A stretch of DNA of 64,000 bases from Phaeosaccion multiseriatum (taxonomy: Eukaryota > Protista > Ochrophyta, other classes). The notes under the pieces were generated by a model. That model saw nothing but the letters and a program-made list of their open reading frames with translations. It had not been told where the DNA came from and ran no database searches. The stretch spans positions 62,001 to 126,000 of the forward strand of contig OZ218951.1 in the NCBI GenBank assembly GCA_965112735.1, in the 5' to 3' direction. Made by a program: the position numbers and the translations under genes. Positions 6,701-64,000 of this stretch are shown here, piece by piece (the first letter of the stretch is position 1; each line of letters opens with the position of its first letter).

Positions 6701-6835
6701 CAAGTTGGTCTTGCCCGTCTCCCTGCTGGCATCGCTCTTCTTGTCTCCCTGGTGCAGAGTGCTCCCAAGTCGGGCGCCGTTGGTCTGTTGCAGGGTCAAC
6801 GCTGCTCCCAACAGCAGGAGAGGAAGCCTCGCCAT
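740..6835 (-). CDS. Mucin-like Cys-rich/Pro-Thr repeat secreted protein, copy A (multi-exon; ends at a frameshift stop, no TM anchor)
   Basis: Signal peptide MARLPLLLLGAALTLQQTNGA at 6835. Four FCDxxC...GGx|xCxxxGxGxxCRxC[YF]T-type domains separated by PTKAWTAPP repeats, with canonical GT-AG junctions. A 4-bp insertion near 751-754 gives TGA at 740-742. Confidence 0.8.
1410..3870 (-). repeat. Coding minisatellite: 120-bp (40 aa) and 192-bp (64 aa) units of TKAWTAPPT(V/P/I)...PTPKPTPHPTPAP in one ~2.7 kb exon
   Basis: Strict 120-bp period from ~1440 to ~2760, then 72+120-bp higher-order units. Confidence 0.95.
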
Positions 6836-7475
6836 GCTCTCTCCAAACGGCTGCGAGAACCGCGCTAGGTACTTCCAGGTAGTGCTGTCAGAAAGGGGGA
6901 GGGGTGAGGTGAGGATCTCTCTCTAGTATCTTGGTTGTCCGTTGTGCCTGAGAAAGATACTTTGTGTGTGAAAGGAATGTTGAGGAATGGCCTCTCGCAG
7001 CAGACTGTTGGCCGTTGGTGATTTTTCAATAGCTTGATCTCCTCGGCACATCAATTAGTAACGGACAATTTGAAATAGGATAAAGAGGTGTATGGGTTAG
7101 GATAAGTGCTTGCTGCTGCTGCAGACAAGAGGGCTCCGGTGGCCAGGAATAAGGCCACCGCCCACGAGCAGGTGCGTAGTGCGCAGCCGGGTTATGAGGC
7201 AGAGGAGGGGAGTAGGGGGAGAGGAAAGGTGGGCGAGGCAGGAGGGGCAGTAGGGAGTGAGGAAGGAAGAGAGGGGAGGGAGAAGGACGAGACAGGGAGA
7301 GGGAATTATGCCCGCTGAATCACTTAGACAGCGCGGTCTCACTGGTGGGCCACCGCACGAGTAGGCCTTCCATTGCCTAGCCTCAACGCGAATAGCCTGA
7401 CTGACCCCCACGTGTCGCAACCTCCGGCCTAGCCTGACGCCAAGTGTGGCAACCCCTGCTGGCCTTTGGCTGCAG

Positions 7476-7699
7476 GTGCGGATTGATGTGCTGGCGGAGC
7501 TCGGGGAAGATGCTTCGGAGGCGGACAGACTGCACAGAGAGCGGGTGAGGTACACGGAGCTGGCAGGAGATGCGTCTCAATGGGGGACTGGGGACTGGCC
7601 TCTACCTCCGTCGACTCTTCCACTGTCCGTAGGCCCTCATTCGACAGAATGAGCGAATCAGTGCAGCCTCCTATACCCTGAGCAGCGCGCGCCCTCACA

Positions 7700-7765
<66 letters not shown>

Positions 7766-8218
7766 ACACGCAGGAGGTGCTGGCGGAGGGGAAGGATTTA
7801 GCGATGGAGGCGGAGAGGGCCCGTCTGGAGAGCATTCGAAACGACCCCGTCAGAGAGGGCTACTACGTGCGGGTGAGGACACCCGAAACCTGTGATATAC
7901 CTGCCTGTCTGTCTGCCTATCTGTACGTATGTCGGCATGCCTGCCTTGCACACTCAGTGCTTGTCCCAGCCTCTGTCTGCATGTGCCTACCTGCCTATGA
8001 CTTGTGCCTGCCCGCCTCCCTCTCTGCCTGTCCATGTGCCTGCCTGCCTGCTTCCCTCTCTGCCTGCCCATATTCCTGCCACAGCGCATGGCTCTGGCGG
8101 GCCTTGCTGTGCTTGCAGTGTGCGCCGTGTACGCCTTCCGAGATGACCTCGGAGAGAGCTTCGACGCCGTGGGGAGAAAGAAGGCCGGAGCCACGTGGAC
8201 TGCCCCGGAAGGGGGCAA

Positions 8219-8252
<34 letters not shown>

Positions 8253-8282
8253 GGTAGTGACGGCAGCAAGAAGGAGAAGTGA
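7476..8282 (+). pseudogene. 5'-truncated three-exon remnant (7476-7544, 7774-7872, 8085-8282) of a gene encoding a protein with a C-terminal TM segment
   Basis: Phase-0 GT-AG exons splice to VRIDVLAELGEDASEADRLHRER|EVLAEGKDLAMEAERARLESIRNDPVREGYYVR|RMALAGLAVLAVCAVYAFRDDLGES...KKEK*. No start exon in the duplicated unit. Confidence 0.65.
7696..7763. repeat. (CA)n microsatellite
   Basis: About 30 CA units seen directly. Confidence 0.95.
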
Positions 8283-8387
8283 CAGGCAAAGACACTGAGT
8301 AGACTAGGCGTGATGTGTGAGCATAACAAACGATTCATATTACAGTTGAAGTCAACATAGGCGCTGCTGTGCTGCTGCCGCCCTTAC

Positions 8388-8772
8388 CTACCCTACTGTC
8401 GAGGATGCTAGAAAAAGGTGTTCACCTCCCTCCTCTGTCCTCCTTATGCTATGCTACGCAAAGTGCTTCATCGTACTCACTAACCCTACTGTCGAGGATG
8501 CTAGAAAGAAGGGTGTTCACCTCCCTCCTCTGTCCTCCTTATGCTATGCTACGCAAAGTGCTTCATCGTACTCTCTAACCCTACTGTCGAGGATACGAGA
8601 TGGAAGGGTGTTCCCCTCCCTCCTCTGTCCTCCTTGTGCTATACTACACAGAGCGCTTGCTATCGCACTCTCTAACCCCACTGTCGAGGATGCTAGAAAG
8701 AAGGGTGTTCCCCTCCCTCCTCTGTCCTCCTTGTGCTATGCTACACAGAGCGCTTGCTATCGCACTCTCTAA
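8388..8772. repeat. ~95-bp minisatellite, 4 copies, between convergent 3' ends
   Basis: Units start at ~8391, ~8484, ~8580 and ~8677. Confidence 0.9.
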
Positions 8773-8948
8773 GGCGCTACCAAGGCCGTCCTGCCCGGCC
8801 TGTTTGTCTTCCAATCACTCTCCCTTTCTTGTGTACACAGGCGGCGCTCCTTCGCGCTCCCGCCTTCCTTCCAATCGAGTCTCTCTGAGAAAGGGACTCT
8901 CGCACGCGTGGGTACGTAAGGCCTGCTCCTTGGCTCAGGGCCTCAGTT

Positions 8949-11900
8949 TCAGTTGGCTTCCATCTGCCCCTGAACTTCCGCGTTGACATCAGCCTCCCCC
9001 TGCCCCGCCGACTTGGTGCGAGCGTTGTTTACTGCGAGCAGGGCCGCCACCAACACGACGCCCGCCACAACGATGCCGGCAATGGCCCCGTCAGAGAGGC
9101 GACGCTTGCCCCCACCTGAGGAGCTGCCGCTGCGGCTCGTGGTCTCCTCCGTGCCGATCTTGCGAGTGCCGTCGGAGTTGCGGAGGCTGTTTCGGTTTCG
9201 GAGTTTCGGAGGAGGGGAGGGAAGCAGAGAAACAGAGGTGGTACGCAGTTAGAGGACTAGCTACTTAAGGAGGGAGGGCTCGTGCAGGTGGCAATAACGG
9301 GGGCAGAGGGAGTGGCCGGCGTGTGACTGACCTGGAGGTGGCCACGAGACAAGCCTGCTCGCCCTCGCACATGTTGACTTCCGCACAGTCTTCGGTGGGA
9401 TTCACGCTCAGGTGCATCCGCGCGCCCTCGGCAGTGTCTGAGAGGGCAGCAGGGGAGGGTAGAGGGGGTGTGTGAGTGGTGCGGTAAGGAGGCCGCCGTG
9501 CCCCCGTAAGTCAGTGCTTCGCAGCGCTCTCTCTACTCACAGCATCCGCGGCAGTTACGACCCAAGCCGAACAGGTCACAGTGCACTCCCCCGTGGCTGG
9601 TGCCCTCCTCAGAGCAGGAGGGGTCGCAGAACAGTTCCTTCCCGTTGACACGGAGGAACTCCTCGTCCGCAGAGCTCAGGCGGGAGGAGCAGTCTGCAGC
9701 GGTGGTGCAGCCACCCGAGGGGATGTCATCGGAGCCCTGTGGAGGGAGGGGGGGCAGACGCAGAGGAGGGCGGAGGGGTAAGAGGTGGAAAGGCAAGACC
9801 AGCGGGCATTTCATAGAATAATGGATGTGTGTGTGACTACAAGGCCGCAACGTACCGTCTCAGTCTCAGTGGACGCATCATCGGCGGAGGCCCCATCCGG
9901 AGCAGCGGATGCCAAGTCGTCGCCAGCGCCCCAAGTGGATGAAGAGGACGAGGGGCTCTCCGTCACTAAAGTGATTGTGTTCGTGTTGTCATGTCCGATG
10001 GGCGGGGGCGTCACCACAGAGAGGTCCGGCGCGGTAGTGTCCGCGGCCTGTACGCACGGGCAGGAGGAACGCACAATGAAAAGGGGTGGGGCGGAGAGAC
10101 AGAGAGGGGGGTAGATGCAGCCGTAAGCCGTAAGCATCAACAGCCTAATGCACCTCCAGCAACCAACAGCCTGGACAAGCATCTCGCCGTACCGTGTGCG
10201 GGTGATCGGCAGAGGGTGCCTCAGCAGAGGGCGCCTCAGGAGAGGGTGCATCTGTCGCGCCATCTCCATGTCCATCGGTGTCCGCTCCTTCGGCGTCCTC
10301 ATCGAGGTCGACGCCCCTGGTGGTCACCGAGTCAAGAGCAGCGTCGGACCCTGGCGCTCCATCTCCTCCCTCTCCCGAGCACTGCTGGCCGGGGCACATG
10401 ATGACGCTTGCGCACGATGATCCCGCATTGGCAGCGAGGTACTTGGCAGAGCCTGTCGAGAGGAGGAGGGCAGTGAGCATTAGGCGCAGAAGGGAGACAA
10501 TTGGGCCGCACTGGGAAGGGAGACTAGCCTAGTCCGACACCAGCTTCAGCTCATGTGGACCGAGCGAGCGAGGGCGATCATCTCGAGCCCGCCTCGCCTC
10601 GCTTCGGTCAAAGGCTCACCTTCCGTACTGTAGCAACCCCTGCACTCCCTTTGGAGGCCGAACATTCCGCACCACAGCCCGTCCAGGGAGGGCTCTTCAT
10701 CGAGGCACGAGGTGTCGCAGAACAGCCCCTTCATCTGCTGCTCGAGCTCCATTGACTGCTCCTCAGTCAGGTGCGTCGTATCGCACACGCAGTCCGCATC
10801 GGGCACCAGGGGGGCGGTAGTAGCCTCAGGCCCCATTGTGGGCACCTCCACCTCCACGGTCACAGGCGCGTTGGTCATAGGGTGCACTGGCATGGCCGTG
10901 ACAGGAGCGGGCGTGGGGAGGACGGGGTAGACAGGGACGTCCTCTTCGCCGCACATGTTGAGCTCTCCTGCACAAAAACACACACACACACACACACACG
11001 CAGGGACAGACAGACGAGGGGAGTGAGAGCCTGCAAGGGATGGCGAGGTGAGCGACATTCTCGACAGCCACAGTGGTACTCCGCCGAAGGAGTAGCCCTC
11101 TGTCGTAAGCTTCAAGTCACGAAAGGTTACGTACCTGCAGGGGTGTCGGGGTGCTCCGCGACATACTTTGCCGCGCCCTCCTCCGTGTAGCAAGCTCTGC
11201 AATTCTTGCCAGCCTCGAAGATGTCGCAGTGGCTGGAGGGGAGGGGAGACGAGAGGCCAGTCACAAATGCCAGCGGTGAAGGAGCATGAGGATGAGAACA
11301 CACAAGGGCAGCAGCGAGAAGAGGGGGTGAGGAGTGGAGACCTCTTCCCCGCCGTCGTCAAGGGGACGCTATTCAGGGCGCTCTGGCCACCGACTGCACT
11401 CCCAGTGACTTAATCACTTCCCCTACTCACATTCCGCCGAAGGTGGGGTGTCCAGACGTGCACGTGACGTCACACACGAGGAGCTTGTGGCGCTCGTCAA
11501 GATACTTCTGGTCGTCCTCCGTCAGGGGAGCGCAGCAGGGCTTCGTGGGGGCGGGGGTCATAGGGTAAGGCGTCGGCTTCGGTGTCGGTGCCACTGTAGG
11601 AGGTGCTGTCCAGGCCTTGGTTGGGGCGGGCGTCGGATGCGGCGTCGGCTTCGGCGTCGGTGCCACTGTAGGAGGCGCTGTCCAGGCCTTGGTGGGGGGC
11701 AAGGTGTCTTCCGGGGTAGGAGGTGCTGTCCAGGCCTTGGTGGGGGCGGGCGTCGGGTGTGGCGTTGGCTTCGGCGTCGGCTTCGGTGTCGGTGCCACTG
11801 TAGGAGGTGCTGTCCAGGCCTTGGTGGGGGCGGGCGTCGGGTGTGGCGTTGGCTTCGGCGTCGGCTTCGGTGTCGGTGCCACTGTAGGAGGTGCTGTCCT

Positions 11901-28952: not shown

Positions 28953-30683
28953 ATGGATTCCTACGTGGACTTTATAGCGGGCTGGGTGAGGTACGCCAAC
29001 TTTTGTCTCCTCCCTGTCCCACCTCCACTCTCACTCGCTCCGCGAATTGTGCCTGCCCTCCTTCTCACGCCTTTCGCCAGTGGAGGGGCGGGGCTCCTCG
29101 CCACGCAGCCCTTCGACGGGGTGCTCGTCCGCCTGCAGCAGCCCAAGATGGCTGCGCTGGGGCTACGCCGTGGCTTTTCAGAGTCTTTCACGCGGGCACG
29201 CAGCACCGGACTGTTCCAGGGCCTGTGGCCTATGGTGCTGAGGTGAGGGCACCTAAATGCGGCGCGGGGGAGTGCTCATGATCGCTACGGGCTGAGGCTG
29301 GGTGCTGGTGGGAACGAGAGCAGTCTTTCTTCTCACCTGCCATGTCTTCTTGCCCCTCTCGCTTCCCGCGGCTGCTATTGCTATTGCTGCTGTCATGTGG
29401 TGACTGCAGCGTGCCCCTTCAAAACGCAATTCTCTTCGCCGGCTTTGGCGTGGGCAAGAGCCTGGTGTCGGAGAAGGGCGAGCTGCTGCCCGTGTTTGCC
29501 GGGGGGTGCGCCGGGGGCTTCCTGCAGAGTTTCGTCATGAGCCCCGTGGAGCTTGTCAAGATCAGGGCTCAGCTCGGGCAGCAGGAGGGAGGTGAGTTGG
29601 GAGTGGGAGGCAGTCCCAAAGGGGCTTCGAAGACGACTGCGACGGTCTTGGATCGATCTGATGATGGGCTCCAGTCGGCTCCACACCCCGAAACGTGCCC
29701 TTCACCTCCTCCTCTTTTGCTGTCCCTCTATGACCGACCCAGGTACTTCGATGCTGCAGCGCTTCCAGAGCGAGATTGGAGCGAGAAGGATATTCACGGG
29801 CCTCGCCCCCACCCTTGGGAGGGACGGTGCGTCTTGGAGGAGGGCGTGGCATGAGTGAAGCAGCCGCAGAGCAGTCGGCCTCAACAAGCATGTGCAGGCA
29901 GTCTCGTCCTTGAACAATGGAAGTATTGTACGTGCCTCTGACAGAGCTCCCCTCCCCTGCCCCTCCCCGTCCCTTGCCCCTCTCTGTGTGCACAGTGCTG
30001 CCCCACGGGGTGTGGTTCGCCGCCTACGAGTTCCTCAAGGGCAAGCTCGGTGCGTGAGATAGAGAGAGACGGAGAGAGAAGGCTACCTTGTCTGCTGCCT
30101 GATCCTATTCTCAAGCGGAGTTTTGACTTACGCACCACGCGCCCCCTCACCCCCATTCCCTCTGTTGCGCAGCGGATCAGGGCGCCGCCGGACAAGTGGC
30201 GTCAGGCGCAGGGGCCGCCACGGTGAGTGACATGGCGAGAGGCAGTTCTGGCGATACGATGACCCGTCAGCTGTTGAATCCTTGCTGACCCCTTGTCGAC
30301 TCCTTGTGCCCCTCGTGTGCTCCTCTCCTCTTGTAAAGGTTGCGTGGGTGGTGGGGTATCCCTTCGACGTCATCAAGACGCGAATGCAGTCTCAGCTGGG
30401 TGGAACAGCCGCAGCAGAAGGGGCATCAGCAGGGGCTTCGGCGGGAGGGAAAGTAGGAGCAGCAGCAGCAGGAGGAGGAGGAGCTACAGCAGGGGCAGCA
30501 GCGACCGCAGGGACGGAGGGCGGGGGTAAGGGCATGCTGGCTGTGGCGGGGCGCATGCTGAGCGAGGAGGGCGGGGTGGTGTTCTGGAGGGGGCTTGACC
30601 TCAAGCTCATGCGGGCCGTGCCCATGAGTGTCATCGGCTTTTACGTCTACGAGGCCGCGGCACAGCTGCTCAGGGCCTCATAG
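28953..30683 (+). CDS. Mitochondrial carrier (SLC25; carnitine or basic-amino-acid carrier-like)
   Basis: Three Px[DE]xx[KR]x[RK]-type signatures (QPFDGVLVRLQ, SPVELVKIRAQ, YPFDVIKTRMQ), N-terminal DFIAGWVSG, C-terminal FWRGLDLKLMRAVP; multi-exon. Confidence 0.92.
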
Positions 30684-31080: not shown

Positions 31081-32172
31081 TCACGCTGGCGAAAGCGATG
31101 CTACCGGGGAGGCCTCCTCCTCCTCCTCGTCCTCGTCCTCCTTGTCTTTATTCTCTCTGAACCCCACAGTACTGAGGTACGTCTGCCAGAAGATCTGAAC
31201 GCCACTAGCATAGGTGGGGCGGATGTGAATGGGCACAAACGAGAAGCCAATGAAGTTGGCGATGGGCCACAGTTTGAGGTCGGTCGTCCACGTCTCAAAC
31301 AGCTTGGCCCTGACGTTCGCCTCGGCCGCTGCAAAGTCACCACCACTCGAGTACAGCGCCGACACTGACAGGTAGCTCACGGCCAGCTGAGGACCGAACA
31401 CGAGCTCATCGCACACAATCTTCTTGAGCACGGACACCGTGTCCACCCTGTGAGTGTGTGAGTGAGTGGGGAGGGGTGAGTGCGCGGGTGAGAGAGTGAA
31501 TGCGTCAGTGATTTGAGTGAGTGAGTGAGTGAGTGAGTGAGTGAGTGAGTGGGGTGAATGAGTGAGTGAGTGATTTGAGTGAGTGAGTGAGTGCGTGGGG
31601 TGAGTGAGTGAGTGAGTGAGTGCGTGGGGTGAGTGAGTGCGTGAGTAAGTGAGTGTGCGTGAGTGAGTGATTGAGTGAGTGAGTGAGCGAGCGAGTGAGC
31701 CAGCAAGTAAGTGACCTGGGGCTCACGATGCGGTCCAAAGCGCGGTACCAGTAGTGCATGAAGATACCGTTCTGCACGAGCCCCTGAGCGAGGAGAGCAT
31801 GCATCATGCAGGTAGGGAGGGGGGCAGGCCTGAGCCACAAATTGTGTACCATATCACTCCAGGAGCAATGATCTAAACTTTTAATGAGACTGCGAAATGG
31901 GGAAGTGTTGCAGCCAGCCCAGCCATATCTGTGCTCCTCACCAGACATCCCATCGTGAGCGTCCGCTTGGGATCCCACGCCCTGCTGTTGCTGGTGCTGC
32001 TGCCGCTCAGCTTCTTCTCCTCCGCCATCCTCTCCAGAGCCTGGGCAATCCCATCCCCGATGGAGAAGACAGTGAACCCCACACATGCATTGGCCGCGAG
32101 AGTGTGCTCTTTGTAGAAGGAAGCCACCTTGAGCCGGGCGGCCAGGAGCCGTGCTTTAATAAGGCTGCCCAT
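31081..32172 (-). CDS. Mpv17/PMP22 family membrane protein (3 exons)
   Basis: GDGIAQ, WDPKRT, HYWYRALDR, KKIVCDELVFGP and WPIANFIGFSFVPIHIRPTY...FWQTYLS motifs. Confidence 0.93.
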
Positions 32173-47063: not shown

Positions 47064-47575
47064 AGAGTGAGACCATTTGCGCTTGGTTTGCTCGCCGGGT
47101 CGATGGACTGCAGCCGCCGGCCTGACGCCTTGACGCGTCCCTCCGTCCCTCCTACCCTCCTTCCTCCTCCAGGGGCGAGCTGCCCCACTTCGCCGGCATC
47201 AACACGTTCATGAAGGCCCCCTTCGTGGAGGATATTAAGAAGTGCGGGGCATACGACGCCGCCGTGCTGGGCGTGCCCTTCGATGGAGGTAAGTGCGTGC
47301 GTGCACGGGTTGAGGGGCGAAGTAAGCAAGGCGACTTTAGATGCCCCTCCCTCCCCCCCTTCACACACTCCTGCTGCAACCAACCCTTCCCGCTTGTGTC
47401 GCCCCTCCCGCTCAGGCTGCACCTACCGCGCCGGCACGCGCTTCGGGCCACAGGGCATCCGCCGCATCTCTGCGCTGTACACGCCGTACCACTACGAGAA
47501 AGGTCCGTTGTGTCGAGAGCCTTGAGTGTGTGGGAGGGCGTGTCTGCTCGGAATCAATGTACTTGCGCTGCATTG
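47064..47575 (+). pseudogene. gdmH: Near-identical duplicated fragment of the guanidine hydrolase gene (end of intron 3, exon 4, intron 4, exon 5, start of intron 5)
   Basis: Matches 60581-61092 with only one difference that I noticed (ggaatc vs gggatc); introns are retained. Confidence 0.95.
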
Positions 47576-51774: not shown

Positions 51775-53373
51775 GGGAAGGACACGAGAGGAAGGAACAG
51801 GGTGGGGAAAGAGCGGAAAGGCGGCACTCTGGTCGGTACACACCTGCCGTTGGAGTGCCGTTGGACTACCTTCGCTTCTGGACCACCTCTGAAGCGTGCA
51901 CACGGCAGAGCAGGGGCAAACGCGAGACCACAGCATACATGGGTACATGGGTAAGCACGGGAAGCAGCTCCAGGCCCGCGGGGGCGCGGGGGGGGGGGGC
52001 AGGAGAAGAGCTCACACATCACGACCGTTCCATCCACCTCCCCTTTCATTGCGTACTACAGGGCGGCTGGAGCAAGAAAGAGGAGCAGAGGGAAGAAGAG
52101 GGGGGCGGGAAGGAGAGGAGAGGAAGGAACAGGGTGGGAGAACAGCGGAAAGGCGGCACTCTGGTCGGTACACACCTGCCGATTGCCGTTGGAGTGCCGT
52201 TGGACGACCTTCGCTTCTGGACCGTCTCTGGAGCGTGCACACGGCAGAGCAGGGGCAAACGCGAGACCACAGCATACATGGGTACATGGGTAAGCACGGG
52301 AAGCAGCTCCAGGCCCGCGGGGGCGCGGGGGGGGGGGGGCAGGAGAAGAGCTCACACATCACGACCGTTCCATCCACCTCCCCTTTCATTGCGTACTACA
52401 GGGCGGCTGGAGCAAGAAAGAGGAGCAGAGGGAAGAAGAGGGGGCGGGAAGGAGAGGAGAGGAAGGAACAGGGTGGGAGAACAGCGGAAAGGCGGCACTC
52501 TGGTCGGTACACACCTGCCGATTGCCGTTGGAGTGCCGTTGGACGACCTTCGCTTCTGGACCGTCTCTGGAGCGTGCACACGGCAGAGCAGGGGCAAACG
52601 CGAGACCACAGCATACATGGGTACATGGGTAAGCACGGGAAGCAGCTCCAGGCCCGCGGGGGCGCGGGGGGGGGGGGGCAGGAGAAGAGCTCACACATCA
52701 CGACCGTTCCATCCACCTCCCCTTTCATTGCGTACTACAGGGCGGCTGGAGCAAGAAAGAGGAGCAGAGGGAAGAAGAGGGGGGCGGGAAGGAGAGGAGA
52801 GGAAGGAACAGGGTGGGAGAACAGCGGAAAGGCGGCACTCTGGTCGGTACACACCTGCCGATTGCCGTTGGAGTGCCGTTGGACGACCTTCGCTTCTGGA
52901 CCGTCTCTGGAGCGTGCACACGGCAGAGCAGGGGCAAGCGCAAGACCACAGCATACATGGGTACATGGGTAAGCACGGGAAGCAGCTCCAGGCCCGCGGA
53001 GGCGCGGGGGGGGGGCAGGAGAAGAGCTCATACATCACGACCGTTCCATCTACCTCCCCTTTCATTGCGTAGCTACAGGGCGGCTGAAGCAAGAAAGAGG
53101 AGCAGAGGGAAGAAGAGGGGGGCGGGAAGGAGACGAGAGGAAGGAACAGGGTGGGAGAACAGCGGAAAGGCGGCACTCTGGTCGTACACACCTGCCGATT
53201 GCCGTTGGAGTGCCGTTGGACCACCTTCGCTTCTGGACCGTCTCTGGAGCGTGCGCACGACAGAGCAGGGGCAAGCGCAAGACCACAGCATACATGGGTA
53301 CATGGGTAAGCACGGGAAGCAGCTCCAGGCCCGCGGAGGCGCGGGGGGGGGCAGGAGAAGAGCTCATACATCA
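51775..53373. repeat. Tandem array of ~339-bp units, ~4.7 copies, upstream of the Crypton ORF
   Basis: Marker ggaaggaacagggtggg at ~51790, 52122, 52461, 52801 and 53139. Confidence 0.95.
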
Positions 53374-54067
53374 CCCCCCCTCCCCCCCCCCGCCATCTTT
53401 CGCAGTCAGTCTTTCCCTCTTCCCTACTCTTCCTGCCTGCTTTCCTCCCCCATGTGCGTCCGCCCTCCCCCCGCCTTTCCCAGCCAGGCTCTGGCCGCGG
53501 CGGCACTCATGTTACCTGTTGCATTTAACCCAGTTTCTTCTGAGCAAGAGCCACAACAACGGCCTAAATAAATTTTGGTAATGGGGAATGGGGGCGTGTG
53601 GGCTTTTTCATTGACTTGTGGGGGTTCGACACGCCGAATCCGGGGGGTTCCCGCCGGATATTTTTTTGGCATCCTAAATGATGGTACCAACTGTACAGCC
53701 TCACACTTGCAAGCTACAATCTCTCTTGCTGCAAGGCACGTGAGGAACCCCCACCGCTCTTCCAGTAAGCACACAGGTGCACTCCTCCCCTTCCGATAAA
53801 GGTGGGGTCGCTAGAGGCAGGGGCGGTGTTTGTGCAGGCAAAAGAAAGGTGCTGTGGCGTGCCCAAACTTTTAACAGGTCTCACCATTCATGTATGATTC
53901 TCTACAGCGCTCGCCCTACTGGGTTCGTACTATAGGTGCTGCTGTGTGCTGCAATGACTTTCCTCTCTCTCTCTCTCTCTCTCTTCATTTGAAGATTGAT
54001 TAATGAACTAACTCTCATGCTCTCCGCTCCCCTTTTATGCATACTCTGCCTGTAGAGGTTAGCAACG

Positions 54068-57000
54068 ATGGCGCAGTGCTTGCCCGAGGGAGATTTGGCC
54101 TCTTCTCTGGGACTTGGTAGCCTAGCGGAGGACTCCTGCTGCCAGGTGGGTGAGAGAAGCAAAGGGGGGTCGGCTCAACCCTTTCCCCCCTCTCTTTCTA
54201 CCAGGAGGCTGCTCATGTGGTTGACATGCATGTGTGGTCCTGGGGCCTGGGACCCTTCTTACGCCTCTAGCGCCCGTCCCCCGTCAACTACTATCGCAGT
54301 TCGAGGTGTGCGGCCTGCCATGTCCGGCGGTGTGGGAGCCGCGCTCGTCGTTGTCCGGCACTTATGGCGCTGCCGGTGAGTCGGGGTAATAGTCGGGGTA
54401 GTCGGGGTAATCCATGCATGGGGGTAGGAGCACTAATCAAAAATGCACCAGTAATTGGGGGGGGGGATGGAAGAGAGGGAGCAGGCAGTCAGTCCAGATC
54501 TAATGTTGCTCTCCTTGCTTGGCTGCGGCTTCGCTTCACTTGTTGCTCCGCTCCGGTTCTCGTTTCTTGCTTTCGCCTCCTCGCTCGTCCTGCGTGAACA
54601 TGCCATCCTGCCGCTCGCTCCTGGCTGGCTGCTGCCGTCCCTGCCGGCGCAGTCATTTGTGCGGTGCTCTTCTTCACCTGCCTGGGAATTGCCACCATGT
54701 TGAAGGTCAAGGGCAAAGGTACGTACAGAGTGTGGAATGTATTGCGTGTCCCATCAGTCAGCCCACACGCCCGCCTGTCGCGCCGTGCCTCCGGCCCTCT
54801 TCCCCCTCCAGCTGAGGAGTTCTTCGTGTGTGGGCGCTCTCTGCCCCTCTTCGTGGTGAGCCTCACTCTGGCCAGTCAGTCGCTCGACTCCAACGCCACG
54901 CTTGGGAATGCGGATCTTGCCTACAAGGTATGAACATGTTTTGCGCTGTGCCTCCTCGCTCCTCAGAAGTGCTTGTGGACTTCCCGAGTCTTGCTTGTCG
55001 TGGCACTGACGCCCCGGCTCCACCACCCCCTCTGCCCATACGCCTGTGCAGTTCCATTTTTGGGACGGAGCTGTGCTGCCCATCGGCTTGGGCCTCTCGC
55101 TGCTGCTGAATGCGATATTCCTGGCCCGAAAGATCCATGCCGTGCCGGGGGTCTTCACGCTTCCTGACGTCATCGGCCGCCATCACGGCCCCGCGGCGGA
55201 GGTGATTGTGTCCCTCATCGAGTGCGTGAGCTTCCTGTGCCTCCTCGCCGGAAACTTCGTGGGTGAGTGCCTGCGATTCTTTCTTTCTGCGTGCGTGTGC
55301 GTGCGTGCGTGTGCGTGCGTGCCTGTCTCTGGGATGAGGAGGGGGCCGTCCCGACACGTGCCACCAAAGACCCAGGCCTTCCGTGGAGCTTCCTCCGCCC
55401 CTGTCGCACTGCGCCTCCACCAGTCTCACCCCCGTCCTATCTCGCTCTCTCTCTCTCTACTCACAGGCATGGCCCGTATCTTTGAGTTTCTCTTCTCCGA
55501 CCTCAACAAGGGCGGCTCCGTCTTCCTCATCGCCATTCTCACCGCCCTGTACACGGGAGCAGGAGGTTTGTCTTGCAAGTCCCGTCATGCCTGTGTGCTG
55601 CCCTCTGTCCCTCACTCACGCGTGGGCCTCTCTGTCTATGCCTTTGCGTGTATCCTTGGCTCTGTTGGGGCACAGGTCTGTACTCTGTGGCCTACACCGA
55701 CGTCATCCAGGTCCGTCGGTGCTCTTTGCAAAGCACCAAGCAAGCAAGCAAGCGGGTCCTCCCTATCCTATTTTCGACACTCAAGACCCTCCCGTCCGCA
55801 CTCCTTGAAACTCAAACTGTCCTCGGAAACGCCCCTCCCTACCGCCCCTGCCTGCCCCTCTCTGCCCCTCTGTGTCAGGTGCTGATGGGCATCAGTGGCC
55901 TCATCGTCGCTGTTACCGTCATGATGAGCAAGCAGAACGATGACTTCCCAAGCCCCTCCGTTGGCTTCCCCGACTACGCCTACCCGCCCGACGGCGACGC
56001 CTGCGAGCTGTACAACGGCGTGCCGGGCACAGCTGACCCCGAGTCTTGTGTTTATAACTCGGAGGAGTTCGGCCCCGACGGCGTGGATAACGGCGCATAC
56101 CCGTACGGAGATAAGAAGGTGTTCAACGACGGCATGGAGGACTTCGACGCCTACGCACCCTTCCCTAACGCCATGTTCTTCAACTGGGCCACCATCTTCA
56201 TCCTCGGCTTCGGAAACCTCGCCGCGCTCGACTTCCAAGCCCGAGTCATGGTGAGGGATGTGTGTGCGTGTTTGTGTGTGTGTGTGTGTGCGTATGTGCA
56301 TGTGTGCGTGTGAGTGTGCGCGCGTGCGTGTTCGTGTGTACGTGTGTGTGTGCGTGTGTGTGTGTTTCAGACATGCCCGCATACTCGTATTGCTGCGGCT
56401 GAGCGGCCATTCTTGCCCCCCTTCGCGTGTGTACGCCCCTCCGTGTGTGCCCACGCCGCTCGACAGGCCTCCAAGACGGCCAAGATCGCTACCCTCGGCA
56501 ACCTCGTCGGCGCCGGTCTCACCTTTGGGGTAAGTTACTGAGGGAGTTGTTCACATCAGACCCCCCTTGCCGGGTGCGCTTACTTGCCCCCTTGTGTGCG
56601 TGACCACCCCCTTCAGGTGGGCATCCCCTTCGGGCTGCTGGCAGGTCTGTCTCGCCTGCACTACGGCCCTGATTCCCAGGTGAGTCCAGTTGCTTGGGCT
56701 GCCTACCTATGTACTTAAGTATCTCGCAGCTTGCCTCCGCCCCCCCGACAAGTGCCAGTGTCTCAACGCCCCCAACTCCTCCCCCGCTCTGTGCTGGACC
56801 CCTCCGCGCTCTTCCCCTCGACAATGCGATGACTTCCAACCCCTTCACCTTCCCCCGCGGGAGCAGTTCGCAGAGTTCGAGCCCAACACATGCTCGTCGC
56901 AGGTGCGTCTCACAGATGGCAGGGGGTGGTGTACGGGGCCTGTCGCTGTGCTGTGTCGACCTGTGGCCCTGACCTCTGCCTCCCCCACTCCGCTCCCCTC

Positions 57001-58892
57001 CCCTCCCCTCCCCTGTGATCAGATCGGCCTCCCGTCCTGCGCCCAGTGGCTGCCCGACAAGTTCGCCTTCCTCAGGCTTGGTGAGAAGAGAGCAGATCAA
57101 CACACACTCTTTTCTTGTCCTGAGGCACTTACCCTTACCGGCCGGCCGGTGCTGCAGAGGTGTCGACCCCATGGGCGGCCGTCTGAGAGAGAGGCTCCTC
57201 ATGCCTGACCTGCCCCTCCCCTCGCCCTGTCCCTCGCCCTGTCCCTCGCCCTGTCCCTCGCCCTGTCCCTCGCCCTCCCTCTCGCCCTGTGCTCAGTGAC
57301 GACGCAGTTCCCCACGTGGCTCGGGTGCTGGACCCTCATCGGAATCGTCGCCGCGTCCATGAGCACCAGGTGCGTCTTCTCCTCGCGGGTTCAAACACAG
57401 GGTTAGGGTCAAGGGAGGGAGGAGTGGCTCTTCTTCTCCATGAGCTGCGTGTCGGCTGAGCGCGGACCAGCCAGCCTGGTCAGAGAAGGCGAAAGTGCGT
57501 TGGTCGCGAAAGCGGCGTCCTCGCTCATCTCTCCTCTCTCCTCTCTCGCATAGTGTGGCTACTCACATCTCCATCCCTCTCCCTCCCTCCCTCCCTCCCT
57601 CCCTCCCTCCTCCCGCCCCTCTTGTGCATGGTGTGTCCTGCCTTGACTTGTGCAGTGATGGAGCCATCCTGGCCATCTCCACGGTTCTGAGCCACAACAT
57701 CGGCCGCAAGCTTCTGTCGGGCACCGCGGCGGGCAGGGAGAACATGGACAAGTACTTGCTGCTCATCGTCAGAGTCACCATCGTTGTAAGTGGAAGAGGG
57801 GAGCAGGGGTGTGCGTGCGTGCGTGCGGCTGTGTGGGACGGGAGAAGAAGGGATAGGATACACCCCCATCCCATCCATACGTGTGTACAACACCCGTTCT
57901 GAAACAGCCCCCCCCCTGCCCCTCCACGCTTCCCTCGCAGCCCGTAGTGATCATCGCTGCCGTCGTCGCCACGCTCTACAACGAGACAGGCTATCGTGAG
58001 TGCCGTAGTAGTCTCGTCGCGGACGGGGGGGGAGCGAGAGACAGCATGCCCACCGAGGCTTTTCACTTTGTTGGCCCTTGTCGACCGTGACAGTTACTTG
58101 CCCCTGCCCCATGCCCCGTGCACTGCCATCCCCTGTCCCCAAGTGCTCATCGTGGCCTTCGACATCGTCCTGGCCGGAGTGGTGCCCGCAATCTTCGCGT
58201 GCTTCTACGGCCGCAAGCTGTTCACCAACGGGGGCATCCTCGCGGGCATCATCGCAGGCAGTCTCACGCGCGTGGTGCTTGAGTACGCGCTGCCCAAGGA
58301 CGGCGACCTCGTGCTGCCCGTGGGCAACTTCTCCTACGGCTACGGAGATGCGCAGCCCGGCCTTCCCGAGTTCTTCGATGTACCTGCGGCCGAGCACTGG
58401 GACCCTAGCACCTGCGACCAGCCCAGGCTGGAGGACTGGACCGGCCTCGACAGGTGCGTTGCCTCTCGCCCCTGTCATCCCCTCCCTATTTCTCCCTCTG
58501 ATCCCCCTCCCACCCGTCCCCGTGCCGGCAGTCTGCTGTCTCCCGTGGTGAACATCGTGCTGGCGCTGATTTGGAGCCTCATCGAGAAGAGCACGGGCAA
58601 GTCTCTGTGGGGCTGCCTGCCCAAGTCCTGGGTGGAGCCGTCCAGTGCTTACGTAAGTGCCTACCTGCCTGCATCCCAGGCCCCCTCCAGGCCACCTCGC
58701 TCTTGTCCGCCCACCCATCGCAACCACACACCGTCACACTCACCCGCTTCCTTCCTCTCCCTTGCTGCCTGCCTTGTCCTCACGCAGTATGGCGAGGCCC
58801 ACGCCGGGAAGGAGAATGCCATCGCGGACATGGATGACACCAAGACCACCGATAAGCTGCGCACCAGCAACCACAGGACCGCCGCCATCTGA
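54068..58892 (+). CDS. Sodium:solute symporter (SSS/SLC5), SLC5A7/CHT1-like, with a Cys-rich N-terminus; candidate guanidine importer
   Basis: Spliced protein MAQCLPEG...DSCCQ|FEVCGLPCP...; EEFFVCGRSLPLFVVSLTLASQSLDSNATLG, FTLPDVIGRHHG, GG|LYSVAYTDVIQ, IVAASMST|SDGAILAISTVLSHNI; many TM segments; stop at 58890-58892. Confidence 0.9.
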
Positions 58893-59185
58893 GCGGGAAT
58901 GGAAGCGAAGCGATTCCCCCGGGGGAGGATCGAGCCGGCTCCACGGCTTTGTGCTACACATGGGCACGTGGAGAGTGGAGAGGGAAGAGAGCCTCTTTAA
59001 CTGTAAGGGGCCAGAGAGGGGTGGGGGCTGGCTGGTGCCAGGGTTGGACGTAGGTAGTTACTGTAGCTTATTGAGAGTGGTTTGTGGGTAAGGTAGGAAG
59101 TAGGTAGAGGTTCAAAATAGTGTCCGTCTTTAATGTAGAGTAGTAGTTTGAGCTCTTATAGGAGCTCATAGGCTACATTACAAGC

Positions 59186-59222
<37 letters not shown>

Positions 59223-59309
59223 ACACGTGTTACCACCACGCACGCGCACACACACATTCTGCGCAGGTCAGTACACTGTATTTTAGGGTTAGCTCACGCA
59301 GTAGACACC

Positions 59310-60018
59310 ATCTATCGTAGTGAATATTGAATATTGCACCAGTAAATGGTCAATGAAAAGGTCAATATATGTATGTCAAGTGTTTTGGGTAAGCCCAACG
59401 GCCACAACATAATCAGTCCGTTCCCGTATTGTAGTCGACCCCTGACGTACTATCGACGCATTCTCGATAGCATGCTATCGGCCGCCGGCGATAGCAGATA
59501 CATCGAAGTAGCAGATAGCACGTCAGACGTCCGTCAAACTCGATCAAACACCCTTACCCTTGAAGCTGGCTGGCTGGTGCGGTGGAAGGAGTAGGAGGTT
59601 GGAGCAGAAAAAGTGAAAGATGGGTGGACGAGGAGAAGATACTAGAGATACCAGCGGTGTAGGGGGTGGAGGACTGGTAGAGGAAGGAGAGAAGGAGGAG
59701 TGTGGTGGATGTCAAGGTTCAAGGCGTATGAAAAGGGCAGCGCAAAAGGTGAGGAGCAGAGGCCTTGGCCTTCCCAACCATCCCAAAATATCCGTTTCTG
59801 ATCCATTTAAACCTGGCTGAGAAAGTTGAATGGGGAATAGACCCAAGAAGACTTTGTACAAAGAGTCAGTTCACGTCGGGAGGTGGGCGTGTGTGCGTGT
59901 GTGCGTGTGTGCGCACAGATACCCCCAGCTGGGAGGAAGGAGGAAAAAATCCGAAACTTCCAATTTTTACCTGCGAGCTGTGTGCGGCAACAACATACAA
60001 ATATTGAATATTGTCAAT
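59310..60018 (+). promoter_or_regulatory. gdmH upstream region with a CGATAG/CTATCG palindrome cluster, tandem GGTCAAT and a repeated AATATTGAATATTG
   Basis: CTATCG at 59450 and 59475, CGATAG at 59465 and 59489, AGATA(G) at 59496 and 59513; GGTCAAT at 59348 and 59360; 14-mer at 59323 and 60000. Function is inferred from position only. Confidence 0.4.
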
Positions 60019-63000
60019 ATGTGGTTTGCTTTGAGGACAGCACGCGCAGCGAGGAAGGCAGCTATCGGATCGGTTCGCCATCACCATCCAAGTCCTTTTG
60101 ACGGGAAAGGTGGAGACTTTGGCAAGACGAGGTGTGAATGAAGTGGGAGCTGCTCTGCTGTTAACAATATGCACAAACATATCTCTAAGCTGCTCCCTCG
60201 CTGCTTTCCGCCACTGAATCCCCTCCTTGGCAGGGGATGGAAGGCTGCGCAGGCCGAGAAGGAGCTCCCCCACACGGTCGCCGAGAGAGAGGCGAAGGAA
60301 GGTGAGCAGAGTGTTGAAACGAGCAAAGGGAATCGCGATTGCCTCTACTCGAGGAATCTGCTTCCCAAATCCCACCACTTTGTGTGCGTGGCTGTTTCCC
60401 TCCCGTGCAGGCCTGGAGCTCGGGCTGCCCGGAGCCAGCAGCATCGAGGACAGGACCATCCCCACCTTCTCCAGGTAGGTCGTTTGAGACGAGAGGCAGG
60501 GCTCCTTGCTTTGGACCGAGAGGGGGAGAGGCAAACAAAGAGAGAGAGAGAGAGAAATATAGGCATACAAACAAACAGAAAGAGTGAGACCATTTGCGCT
60601 TGGTTTGCTCGCCGGGTCGATGGACTGCAGCCGCCGGCCTGACGCCTTGACGCGTCCCTCCGTCCCTCCTACCCTCCTTCCTCCTCCAGGGGCGAGCTGC
60701 CCCACTTCGCCGGCATCAACACGTTCATGAAGGCCCCCTTCGTGGAGGATATTAAGAAGTGCGGGGCATACGACGCCGCCGTGCTGGGCGTGCCCTTCGA
60801 TGGAGGTAAGTGCGTGCGTGCACGGGTTGAGGGGCGAAGTAAGCAAGGCGACTTTAGATGCCCCTCCCTCCCCCCCTTCACACACTCCTGCTGCAACCAA
60901 CCCTTCCCGCTTGTGTCGCCCCTCCCGCTCAGGCTGCACCTACCGCGCCGGCACGCGCTTCGGGCCACAGGGCATCCGCCGCATCTCTGCGCTGTACACG
61001 CCGTACCACTACGAGAAAGGTCCGTTGTGTCGAGAGCCTTGAGTGTGTGGGAGGGCGTGTCTGCTCGGGATCAATGTACTTGCGCTGCATTGCTTGCAAG
61101 TGAATCGGGGGGAGGAGAGGGTGTGCGTGCGTGCGAGCGTGCTTTCACGAGTGGGCGTCTCCTCTCCGTGAGACCACTCCGTCGGGCGCCCCTCTTCCTG
61201 TCTTGGCCTCCACCTTTCAGGAAATAAGGAAGGGGGAATCAGTCCCTCGATGACAGCCGGGCTGTAACGGCTGTAGCTTCGCTCCTTAAATCCATCCAGA
61301 GACACTAATCCCACTCTCATCCTTAGATGCATCCCAAAGCCATATCCATCCATCCAGAGGCACACAAAGACAAACACGTGTCCCGAATGTGAGGAGGCTT
61401 ATGAAAAGTGGGGTGTATGTGTGTGTGTGCACCGCCAGCGGCCAGACAGACACGTGTTGCTTCCGCCCCTGACCCCTGACGCCCCTCTCACCCCTGACCC
61501 CTGACACCAGGCATTGACCTCCGCGAGGAGATGACCCTGTGCGACGTAGGCGACGTGTTCACCATCCCCGCCAACATCGAGAAGACGTTCGACCAGATCT
61601 CCAACGCCGTGTCCTACGTGGCGGCCTCGGGGGCCATGCCCATCATCATGGGCGGGGACCACAGGTAAGCGGTGCAAGGTGAGACATGAGAGGAAGTGTT
61701 CTTTGGGATGAAAAACTCCTCCCCTCACTTCCATTTTCAGTTTCAGTTTACTGACCGGACCATGGATTGCCATCTGTTTGGAGTACCGTGCTGACTTTAC
61801 ACCTATCCTTGCCTTGCCTGCTCCGCTCTGCAGCATCGGCTACCCCACTGTACGCGGCATCGCCTCGGTCACCACCAAGGTGAGAACAAGCACACGGCAC
61901 ACGGCACACGAAGGAGACAAGAGGCGGCCCGAGGGTGCCATGCGCGTTGCCCAGATCGCACTGAGCTCGCTACAACTCACTGGCCACGGACTGCGAAGCG
62001 TCCTCCCTTTCACCGCCCTTGGCCCTCCCTCCCTCAGCAGTCTAGCCCCGCTCCTCCCCCCCCTCGCCCTTCCTGCCCACCCAGAAAATTGGCATCATTC
62101 ACATCGACCGCCACGCGGACATCCAGGAGAAGGACCTTGACGAGCGCATGCACACGACGCCCTACTTCCACGCCACCAACATCCCCAACGTGCCCGCCAA
62201 GAACCTCGTGCAGATCGGCATCGGGGGCTGGCAGGTCAGTGCCTCGTGTCAGGCAGGCACTCAGTCAGTCAGTCAGTCAGGCAGTCAGGCAGTCAGTCAG
62301 GCAGTCAGTCAGTCGGTCAATCACTCACTCACTCGCTCACTCATTCAGTCATATTCAGTCAGTCAGTCAGTCGGTCACTCACTCATTCAGCCACTCATTC
62401 AGTCACTCATTCAGTCAGTCAGTCAGTTGGTCAGTCAGTCATTTAGTCAGTCGCTCAGTCGGTCAGGCAGGCCTGTGAGGCTTTTTCTTTGTCTTCCTCT
62501 CCTCTCTATTTCTCTACGTGATGCTCTCTCTCTTGCATTTCTATTTCTCTCTAGTCCTGCCCCCCCCAGTGTTGCTCAGGCCGTGTGCCCCTAACGTGGT
62601 CTCTGTACTGCCCCGTATGCCTCTACTCTGTCTCATCTACTGCCCATTTGCCTCTGCTCAGGTGCCCCGCGCTGCCGTACCCAACATGCGAGACCGCTTC
62701 ACCAACATCTTCACCATGCAGGACCTCGACGACCTCGGCCTGGACAAGGTACTTCTTACGTATGAGTGTGTATGTGTCGTGTGTATGTGTGTGAGTGTGC
62801 ATGTGTGTGTATGTGTGAATGTGCATGTGTGTGTATATGTGTCGTGTGCATGTGTGTGTGTACGTGTGTGAGTGTGCATGTGTGTGTATGTGTGTGTGCT
62901 TTCGTGTAGGTAGAGGAGAGCCTTGCCAGTGACGCATAAGGTCTGCCCTCCCTACTGCGGGACTTCGCTGCCTTCGACACATGTCGCTGAATCTTGCTTG

Positions 63001-64000
63001 CTACCCTGGGGCCTCACACACCGCTCAACACACACACACACACACACACACTCCACACAACACACAACACAAAAGGTGATCGAGATGGCTCTCGAGGCGG
63101 CGTGGGACGGCGTTGACGCGGTGTACCTCTCCTTCGATATCGACAGCTTGGACGCAGGGTGAGTGAGCTCTTCTTGCCTCCCTCTGTCTCTTCTGTGTCC
63201 CGTGCCCTGTCTGGGGACGACGCTGCCCTTGCTCCTCGCTCCTCTCACACCACACGCATCCCGTCCCCTGCCACCCCCTGCCACCCTCTGCCACCCCCTG
63301 CCACCCCCTGCCACCCCCTGCCATCCCCTGCCACCCCCTGCCATCCCCTGCCACCCCCTGCCATCCCCTGCCACCCTCTGCCATCCCCTGCCACCCCCTG
63401 CCATCCCCTGCCACCCCCTGCCACCCCCTGCCATCCCCTGCCATCCCCTGCCATCCCCTGCCATCCCCTGTCATGGACGACCACAGTTTCGTGCCCGGCA
63501 CCGGCTGGCCAGAGCCTGGGGGCTTGATGCCGAGAGAGGCGCACAAGATCGTCGGAGGAGTGGCCAAGGAAGGTGAGAGGGTCAGACAGTCACAGGAGTG
63601 CCCCAAGGAGGATGGGAGGAGAGGAAAGAGAGGGTGGAGGGGGACGGCGGTTTGAGACGACGAGATCGATATCGCTAGGCTTGTGTCTCATGTGACGGTG
63701 CCGCCTGCGGCCTCCGCCGTGCTTCTCTGATGCCCCCCCCTTTCCCTTCCTCCCCAGGCCTGTGCGGCATGGAGCTTGTGGAGGTGTCTCCCCCCTACGA
63801 CGTGGCTGACACCACCTCGCTGCAGGTAAGTGAAGTGGGGAGAAAGGGGGATGAGTAAGTCAGTGAGGAGAAGGTGACAATCCATGTAAGCCAAGCGCCC
63901 TTCCTCACTGTGCATGCACCACTGCTGCATCCCCCCTGCTGCATCCACCCTGCTGCATCCACCTAGGGCCTGCGAGTTATCGTGGAGACGATGGGGGCTC
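60019..64000 (+). CDS. gdmH: Guanidine hydrolase (GdmH/Sll1077-like, arginase/ureohydrolase family) with a putative mitochondrial presequence; 13 or more exons, 3' end beyond the window
   Basis: Exons 60019-60131, 60234-60301, 60411-60474, 60690-60805, 60933-61019, 61511-61664, 61834-61879, 62085-62234, 62662-62748, 63076-63158, 63487-63572, 63758-63825 and 63967 onward. They give IEDRTIPTFSRGELPHFAGINTFMKAP, GCTYRAGTRFGPQGIRRISALY, GGDHS, DRHAD, DERMHT, GIGGWQVPR, SFDID, FVPGTGWPEPGG and VEVSPPYD. Confidence 0.9.
63264..63470. repeat. 10-bp minisatellite CCA(C/T)CCCCTG, ~20 copies, inside gdmH intron 10
   Basis: Seen directly. Confidence 0.95.

Follow-up and report, generated by a model that had tools for sequence, protein, structure and literature searches.

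A GdmH orthologue and an SSS-family symporter in a recurrent gene neighbourhood of ochrophyte algae, with a possible role in guanidine catabolism

The window considered here, that is, the whole stretch of DNA that was analysed, comprises 64,000 nucleotides of the ochrophyte Phaeosaccion multiseriatum (assembly GCA_965112735.1, contig OZ218951.1, positions 62,001 to 126,000 of the forward strand); unless a contig is named, positions below are those of the window. Three-frame translation and homologue-guided splice modelling place two co-oriented genes on the + strand towards its end, one for a transporter of the SSS family at 54068-58892 and, downstream of it, gdmH, which runs from 60019 to the window end. 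GdmH is a Ni-dependent guanidine hydrolase that converts guanidine and water to urea and ammonium. An initial annotation had read the region as two co-oriented, intron-rich genes about 1.1 kb apart, and the splice models bear this out down to the ATG proposed for the first gene. The predicted transporter gene has 18 exons and encodes 688 amino acids, with its ATG at 54068 and its stop codon ending at 58892; the predicted gdmH gene has at least 13 exons and encodes, from an ATG at 60019, the 385 amino acids visible up to the window edge at position 64000. By comparison with bacterial and algal homologues, about 20 C-terminal GdmH residues lie beyond the window. Every intron of both predicted models is bounded by GT-AG. 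No sequencing run of RNA type was found for the region; the runs that contain it cover introns and spacer alike. The two genes and their parts are as follows.

54068..58892, + strand: SSS-family (PF00474) transporter gene, from the homologue-guided splice model
54068-54145, 54300-54375, 54653-54718, 54812-54927, 55052-55262, 55467-55565, + strand: transporter exons 1-6 of the splice model
55676-55710, 55879-56250, 56467-56529, 56617-56679, 56867-56902, 57023-57080, + strand: transporter exons 7-12 of the splice model
57297-57369, 57656-57785, 57941-57995, 58144-58453, 58532-58652, 58788-58892 (stop included), + strand: transporter exons 13-18 of the splice model
58893..60018, no strand: intergenic spacer of 1,126 bp from the transporter stop codon to the gdmH ATG
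60019..64000, cut by the window end, + strand: GdmH-type guanidine hydrolase gene, from the splice model, Pfam Arginase matches and PDB matches
60019-60131, 60234-60301, 60411-60474, 60690-60805, 60933-61019, 61511-61664, 61834-61879, + strand: gdmH exons 1-7 of the splice model
62085-62234, 62662-62748, 63076-63158, 63487-63572, 63758-63825, 63967-64000+, + strand: gdmH exons 8-13 of the splice model

The nature of the downstream gene emerges from several lines of comparison. Pfam PF00491 (Arginase) matches four separate gdmH exons above its curated cut-off and a fifth below it, and the spliced protein contains all three metal-ligand motifs, namely GGDHS (interrupted by intron 6 between GGDH and S), DRHAD and SFDID. 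It further holds the N-terminal extension, with DRTIPTFSR and GELPH brought together by the splicing of intron 3, as well as GCTY, DERMH and GTGWPEPGG; all of the enzyme motifs listed in the initial annotation, where GCTY had been given as GxTY, are hence present. In the PDB (E<=0.01), four enzyme exons match only 7esr/7oi1 and 9fek, at 70-86% identity, with E values of single exons against these solved guanidinases ranging from 1e-19 to 1e-25, well outside what chance would give. The former entries are the Synechocystis guanidine hydrolase Sll1077 and the latter is the guanidinase of Nitrospira inopinata (PMC11410670). An Ectocarpus orthologue, 83% identical to the window enzyme, scores 536 and 524 bits against the two solved guanidinases, as opposed to 174 bits against guanidinobutyrase (GbuA), 161 against guanidinopropionase (GpuA), 134 against metformin hydrolase and 132 against agmatinase. 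The guanidinase-only exon matches and this gap in bit scores rule out an agmatinase or guanidinobutyrase identity and uphold the proposal that the enzyme is of the GdmH type. The same conclusion is favoured at the level of single residues: the guanidine specificity of the Synechocystis enzyme rests on Thr97 and Trp305, the latter equivalent to Trp313 in N. inopinata (PMC11410670), and both are conserved by alignment in the window enzyme, as Thr123 and Trp330 respectively, an assignment that uses the +2 numbering offset of the deposited PDB chains. The residues and motifs in question map to the window thus.

60019..60078, + strand: N-terminal leader MWFALRTARAARKAAIGSVR, a candidate mitochondrial presequence with 5 Arg/Lys and no acidic residue, preceding the conserved HHHP motif
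60938..60940, + strand: Thr123, equivalent to Synechocystis Thr97 and aligned to residue 99 of the 7esr chain and residue 107 of the 9fek chain
61660-61662, + strand: metal ligand His200 of GGDHS, in the spliced protein
62106..62120, + strand: DRHAD metal-ligand motif, from the spliced protein and the Pfam Arginase matches
63136-63144, + strand: metal ligands DID of SFDID, in the spliced protein
63506..63508, + strand: Trp330, equivalent by alignment to Synechocystis Trp305 and N. inopinata Trp313

By these alignments the downstream gene encodes a GdmH orthologue with intact metal ligands and both specificity residues; its guanidine hydrolase activity is predicted, and the algal enzyme would probably depend on nickel. 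The spliced protein aligns end to end with proteobacterial GdmH-type proteins at 69-73% identity, and its identity to brown-algal orthologues is 83-84%. In common with the Synechocystis and N. inopinata enzymes it has the ureohydrolase fold, the metal motifs, the (D/N)R-IPTFSRGELPH extension and the Thr97 and Trp305 equivalents. Unlike them, it is encoded by a nuclear gene with at least 12 introns, carries an extra basic N-terminal leader and reads GGCTY where they have GGTTY. In a tree restricted to 49 GdmH-type proteins, the 20 eukaryotic sequences fall on one side of a branch (support 96) and the sampled bacteria on the other, with the window enzyme grouping with those of brown algae (support 99). 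A bacterial GdmH query yielded only bacteria among the best 120 matches listed; the eukaryotic orthologues surfaced with an intronless eukaryotic fragment (L084:2-727:-) as the query. These come from many diatoms, the Ectocarpales and the haptophyte Diacronema, in keeping with the initial statement that heterokont algae have GdmH homologues, and are annotated as 'agmatinase'. All 18 eukaryotic orthologues that were inspected possess a basic, Arg/Lys-rich leader of 19-45 amino acids with 0-2 acidic residues, which may direct GdmH to mitochondria. Genes for HypA/HypB-type nickel chaperones were not seen beside gdmH in the window. As a separate observation, a proline-rich tandem repeat at 63209-63486, with PLPSPATPCH units in the + frames, takes up much of intron 10 of gdmH.

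Turning to the upstream gene, a lone transporter exon of the window gives a marginal match to PF00474 (E 0.05) and single exons have no PDB match; the SSS membership of its product was established through homologues of full length and through a profile built from six members of the family. Algal proteins of about 700 amino acids were recovered when an open frame containing one of the exons was searched against a library of representatives at 50% identity, and the full-length homologues, 45-60% identical to the window transporter, match Pfam SSF PF00474 at E 1e-10 to 1e-28. The orthologue linked to gdmH in Ectocarpus (P0518) is 60% identical to the window protein over about 630 amino acids. The six-member profile finds sfCHT (E 1e-24), human CHT1 (5e-21), SGLT1 (2e-15) and DUR3 (5e-9) in the PDB, and vSGLT as well. 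As judged by these profile comparisons, the window transporter is a member of the SSS family with CHT1/SLC5A7 the nearest among its solved relatives, and the gene encodes a LeuT-fold symporter of a pan-algal subfamily. This subfamily is found in diatoms, pelagophytes, brown algae, Tribonema, Phaeothamnion, Pavlovales, green algae (Chlamydomonas and Volvox among them) and Mesostigma. Its tree follows the species tree, and the window sequence forms one clade there with those of Tribonema, Phaeothamnion and brown algae (support 98). This agrees with the GdmH tree and makes the source alga a relative of the brown algae; since both gene trees follow the species tree, the proteins compared are orthologues rather than chance paralogues.

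A few peculiarities of the family may be recorded here. A Cys-rich segment (CL..P...CCQ..VCGLPCP) precedes the first membrane helix, falling in exons 1-2 of the window gene (54068-54375), and some homologues have a hydrophobic, signal-peptide-like stretch ahead of it. In the transporter tree, a red-algal record from Gracilaria domingensis (P0502, 'Sodium/glucose symporter') nests within the raphid pennate diatoms beside Fistulifera, which suggests either gene transfer or contamination of the Gracilaria assembly by diatom DNA.

The initial annotation had termed the transporter SLC5A7/CHT1-like. This stands insofar as the profile search makes CHT the nearest solved relative, but the aromatic cage that binds choline is absent. 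In CHT1, choline is recognized by the aromatic residues W62, Y67, Y91, W141, W254 and W406 and the chloride loop 63-VGGGY-67 (PMC11589582); the sfCHT equivalents of these residues have also been described, with W298 corresponding to CHT1 W254 (bioRxiv 10.1101/2025.09.30.678764). In the profile alignment the six aromatic positions, in the above order, become S97, A102, L125, L176, A343 and L512 in the window protein, with high alignment confidence for W62, Y91 and W141 and moderate confidence for W254, Y67 and W406, and the chloride loop reads LDSNA. A CHT1-type choline carrier was accordingly rejected, all six aromatics of the cage being replaced. Within the same pocket segments lie two aspartates, D99 and D345, that do not vary among the six members of the family that were aligned; such a two-Asp pocket would be compatible with a small, hydrogen-bond-donating cation. 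The two segments are located as follows.

54880..54897, + strand: unwound membrane segment S97-L-D99-S-N-A102, aligned to CHT1 W62-VGGG-Y67 (cage and chloride loop)
56224..56232, + strand: A343-L-D345 in the motif GNLAALDFQAR of the other unwound helix, A343 aligned to CHT1 W254

In the alignment of the Na2 region, the window segment AASMSTSDGAIL pairs with AAVMSSMDSSIL of sfCHT, and the latter corresponds to the segment that holds the Na2-site hydroxyls in SSS proteins. The algal transporters resemble CHT1/SLC5A7 and sfCHT (PDB 8j74, 9bfi, 9rws) in family, LeuT-type architecture and the shared motifs GGLYSVAYTDV and AASMS(T/S)xD, and some genome annotations label them 'cho-1' or 'high affinity choline transporter'. 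Unlike CHT1, they have a large extracellular loop and the Cys-rich N-terminal segment, and the identity is only about 25%.

The association of the two genes extends beyond the window. On a diatom-like metagenomic contig (L084), gdmH is head-to-head with the transporter gene at a distance of 748 bp. The same head-to-head arrangement with an SSF gene is seen in Cyclotella cryptica and, with two SSF genes, in Chaetoceros tenuissimus, where a 'Fuseless' gene and a mitochondrial carrier gene follow. The two Chaetoceros copies (L091:4478-5744 and 6737-9130, both on the - strand) are in tandem and nearly identical, the second being shorter (359 amino acids). On contig L086, which like L084 was reached by way of transporter homologues and not of gdmH, a stretch of about 5 kb holds gdmH, then genes for a nickel-transporter-like protein, a mitochondrial carrier and a Fuseless protein, and lastly the transporter gene, which is separated from gdmH by about 4 kb. 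In Ectocarpus sp. CCAP 1310/34, Mpv17 and mitochondrial carrier genes adjoin gdmH. The contig, of 127,906 bp, also carries the transporter orthologue, whose accession number exceeds that of GdmH by three; from the accession numbering, the contig size and the gene order of contig L089, this orthologue probably lies just beyond Mpv17. Same-contig pairs occur in five more Ectocarpus species, including E. siliculosus and Ectocarpus sp. 4, 6 and 12. If the neighbourhood is defined by a transporter orthologue within about 10-20 kb of gdmH, then besides the window it occurs in Chaetoceros, in Cyclotella, on the contigs L084 and L086 and in six species of Ectocarpus. The remaining neighbours are entirely different from one lineage to the next, whereas gdmH, the SSS gene and a mitochondrial carrier occur together in head-to-head, tandem or interrupted arrangements. 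That the pair has been kept despite changes in order, orientation and flanks argues for retention by selection, as is usual for genes serving one pathway. The linkage may perhaps be counted as three independent observations: in diatoms, in the brown-algal lineage and on L086. We propose, giving the idea roughly an even chance, that the two genes belong to a guanidine-catabolism neighbourhood conserved among ochrophytes, part of which falls within the window and in which the symporter would import guanidinium for GdmH.

Several observations weigh against this proposal. Transporter and gdmH are on different contigs in Fistulifera, Seminavis and Pylaiella, and Diacronema has no SSF gene within 10 kb of gdmH, its one identified transporter homologue being on another contig. 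The initial annotation had named a lack of conserved linkage as a refuting condition; this condition does not hold, as the linkage recurs in centric diatoms, the two metagenomic contigs and the Ectocarpus species, but no linkage was found in these four GdmH-bearing taxa. Nor can the diatom cases be counted as independent, and Ectocarpus is likewise related to the window organism. The transporter family also extends to pelagophytes, green algae and Phaeodactylum, and the matches listed include no GdmH from any of these. Linked and unlinked copies are interleaved in the transporter tree, and a specialised paralogue clade of gdmH-linked transporters was accordingly rejected. The alignments behind the comparison of the pockets have an identity of roughly 25%. 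Finally, the N-termini of bacterial GdmH proteins are basic too, by which the algal leader may be an inherited feature rather than a targeting signal. Apart from these, the transporter loci of a Pavlovales species and Scenedesmus have no gdmH within 10 kb.

The four unlinked taxa, the common ancestry of the three diatom cases and the relatedness of Ectocarpus to the window organism would also suit a view of the neighbourhood as a functionless remnant of ancestral ochrophyte gene order, with a housekeeping transporter unrelated to guanidine. We consider this improbable: the two or three genes stay together in varied arrangements across diatoms, the brown-algal lineage and L086, whereas the other flanks differ completely, and the mitochondrial carrier is present in four of the loci, a pattern that points to retention and not to inert synteny. 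The wide distribution of the transporter raises a different issue. As the family extends beyond the taxa in which GdmH was seen, it would have a role independent of GdmH, and the linked and unlinked transporters are the same orthologue. The symporter could hence carry another nitrogenous solute, such as urea, a guanidino compound, an amine or an osmolyte, as part of a co-regulated nitrogen-scavenging set, rather than supplying GdmH with its substrate. The urea carrier DUR3 is itself an SSS member detected by the family profile, and urea is the product of GdmH. We hold this account to be unlikely, though worth serious attention: DUR3 is far more distant from the family profile than CHT (38 as against 90 bits), gene clusters that survive rearrangement usually serve a single pathway, and the two invariant carboxylates would suit a small, hydrogen-bond-donating cation better than neutral urea.

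The proposal of a neighbourhood for guanidine catabolism also draws in genes that lie further upstream in the window, of which the following bear on it.

28962..30674, approximate extent, + strand: mitochondrial carrier (PF00153) gene, from tblastx to the gdmH-adjacent carriers of Chaetoceros, L086 and Ectocarpus and from Pfam on exons
31144..31783, approximate, - strand: Mpv17/PMP22-family (PF04117) gene, convergent with the carrier, from Pfam on exons and comparison with Ectocarpus
47138..47519, + strand: partial copy of gdmH exons 4-5 with the intervening intron, between the Mpv17 and transporter genes, from translated high-scoring segment pairs identical to 60676-61036

The convergent carrier and Mpv17 genes have the same relative arrangement as beside gdmH in Ectocarpus. 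The window carrier is 28-38% identical to the gdmH-adjacent carriers, a level of identity that does not settle orthology; its orthology to them is supported by the synteny with Mpv17 shared with Ectocarpus. The order of carrier, Mpv17 and transporter is probably common to the window and Ectocarpus, with gdmH at the opposite end in the window. Counting the carrier/Mpv17 pair, the neighbourhood spans about 35 kb of the window, about 22 kb of which separates the pair from the transporter gene. The partial gdmH copy may have been left behind by the rearrangement through which gdmH came to lie downstream of the transporter. A mobile element was also observed, in the initial annotation, within the about 22 kb between Mpv17 and the transporter, and the partial copy adjoins it.

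The eukaryotic loci hold further genes for membrane proteins. Between gdmH and the carrier gene, L086 (JGI metagenome contig Ga0605974_0183) encodes at 640-1974 (+) a 445-amino-acid membrane protein with sub-threshold Pfam matches to HupE/UreJ (E 0.017 and 0.11); the Atlas clusters nearest to it bear the name of nickel/cobalt transporters (score 0.90). Transport of nickel by a protein encoded next to a nickel enzyme would suit the proposal, and we mention it only as a lead. A membrane protein of about 200 amino acids matching Pfam 'Fuseless' (PF15993) is encoded at L091:11807-12436 (-), L090:8625-9343 (-) and L086:3162-3734 (-), its gene being the immediate neighbour of gdmH in Chaetoceros and Fistulifera and a part of the cluster on L086. 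A search of the window for homologues of the Fuseless protein and of the L086 nickel-transporter-like protein gave none. Given the recurrence of the mitochondrial carrier in four gdmH loci, the Mpv17 and Fuseless membrane proteins and the basic leader of GdmH, the pathway may be organellar.

Guanidine synthesis has been reported in plants and algae (PMC12186494; PMC11410670). GdmH might thus serve to detoxify guanidine made internally, for instance by enzymes of the homoarginine-6-hydroxylase type, which are known from plants and algae, with the membrane proteins shifting guanidine or urea between compartments or outward rather than bringing in nitrogen from outside. The wealth of organellar membrane proteins in the cluster (Mito_carr, Mpv17/PMP22 and Fuseless) and the basic GdmH leader speak for such a scheme, to which we nevertheless assign a low probability. 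The Cys-rich N-terminus of the transporter, along with the signal-peptide-like stretch of some homologues, would point instead to the secretory pathway or the plasma membrane. Further, SSS transporters are, as far as known, ion-coupled importers, which also speaks against the scheme.

Bacterial gdmH loci offer a comparison for an arrangement of enzyme and importer genes. Of the 80 loci closest to the query exon, 55 have a gene for an NMT1-type binding protein with a BPD/ABC permease, and 11, all from Nitrospira, have an APC-type gene of the amino-acid-permease family; ABC- or APC-type importers at bacterial gdmH loci had been expected from the outset and agree with published accounts (PMC12704784, PMC11410670). 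An SSS relative of the window transporter was present in none of the 80 loci, nor did the bacterial gdmH neighbours include any protein related to eukaryotic Fuseless. The algal neighbourhood is like the bacterial guanidine clusters (GimABC in Synechocystis and many proteobacteria, APC in comammox Nitrospira) in setting the enzyme gene beside that of a membrane transporter, and the proposed logic of import followed by hydrolysis to urea and ammonium would be common to both. It differs from them in that its transporter is of the SSS rather than the ABC or APC class, in that its genes are separate and often divergent transcription units, in the inclusion of a mitochondrial carrier and small organellar membrane proteins, and in that a guanidine riboswitch was not found. 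As regards the last, an Rfam scan of 53000-64000 gave no family at its gathering score and, within the same interval, no match to the guanidine-I, -II, -III or -IV riboswitches at E<=1, from which it follows that any regulation would be transcriptional. The scan also returned a weak match to Hammerhead HH9 in the spacer, at 59116-59189 (-); its 23.6 bits (E 0.036) fall well short of the gathering score of 52, and it is most likely due to chance. Among eukaryotes, the nitrate (NIT) and urea (DUR3 with DUR1,2) clusters of green algae are known to have transporter and catabolic enzyme genes as neighbours; the gdmH neighbourhood resembles these in the adjacency of a transporter and an enzyme for one nitrogen source, differing in substrate, enzyme family and lineage.

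Taking the above together, we advance the following mechanism. The SSS symporter would import guanidinium, probably coupled to Na+. The linked mitochondrial carrier may then move guanidinium, or the urea made from it, across the inner membrane of the mitochondrion, and GdmH, with its basic N-terminal leader, would hydrolyse guanidine in mitochondria. Urease and ammonium assimilation would recover the nitrogen. In its fullest form, which we put forward tentatively and as somewhat doubtful, the ochrophytes would have inherited a dedicated module comprising a Na+/guanidinium symporter of the plasma membrane, a mitochondrial carrier and a mitochondrial, Ni-dependent guanidine hydrolase.

Guanidine has been recognized only recently as a nitrogen source, for cyanobacteria (with GdmH and GimABC) and comammox Nitrospira (with a guanidinase and an APC permease). 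In the guanidine literature searched, no eukaryotic guanidine hydrolase or importer is described, a brief mention of algal homologues in the original 2022 GdmH paper being possible; nor does the literature searched give an account of the transporter-gdmH neighbourhood or of a function for the algal SSS family. As far as these searches show, what is new here is the known logic of enzyme plus importer in eukaryotes, with another transporter class and organellar components.

With a neighbourhood retained in both diatoms and brown algae, there is a concrete candidate for the importer and another for the mitochondrial carrier, and the use of guanidine by eukaryotic phytoplankton becomes a directly testable question. 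Such a neighbourhood would also put right a widespread mis-annotation, by which the algal genes pass for 'agmatinase' and 'choline transporter', and its transporter family would lend itself to studies of how guanidinium is recognized. If the proposal is true, Na+/guanidinium symport would constitute a new substrate class for the SSS family. On the gene content described here, algae with the linked pair may use guanidine as a nitrogen source; major eukaryotic primary producers would then be consumers of environmental guanidine, in competition with cyanobacteria and nitrifiers.

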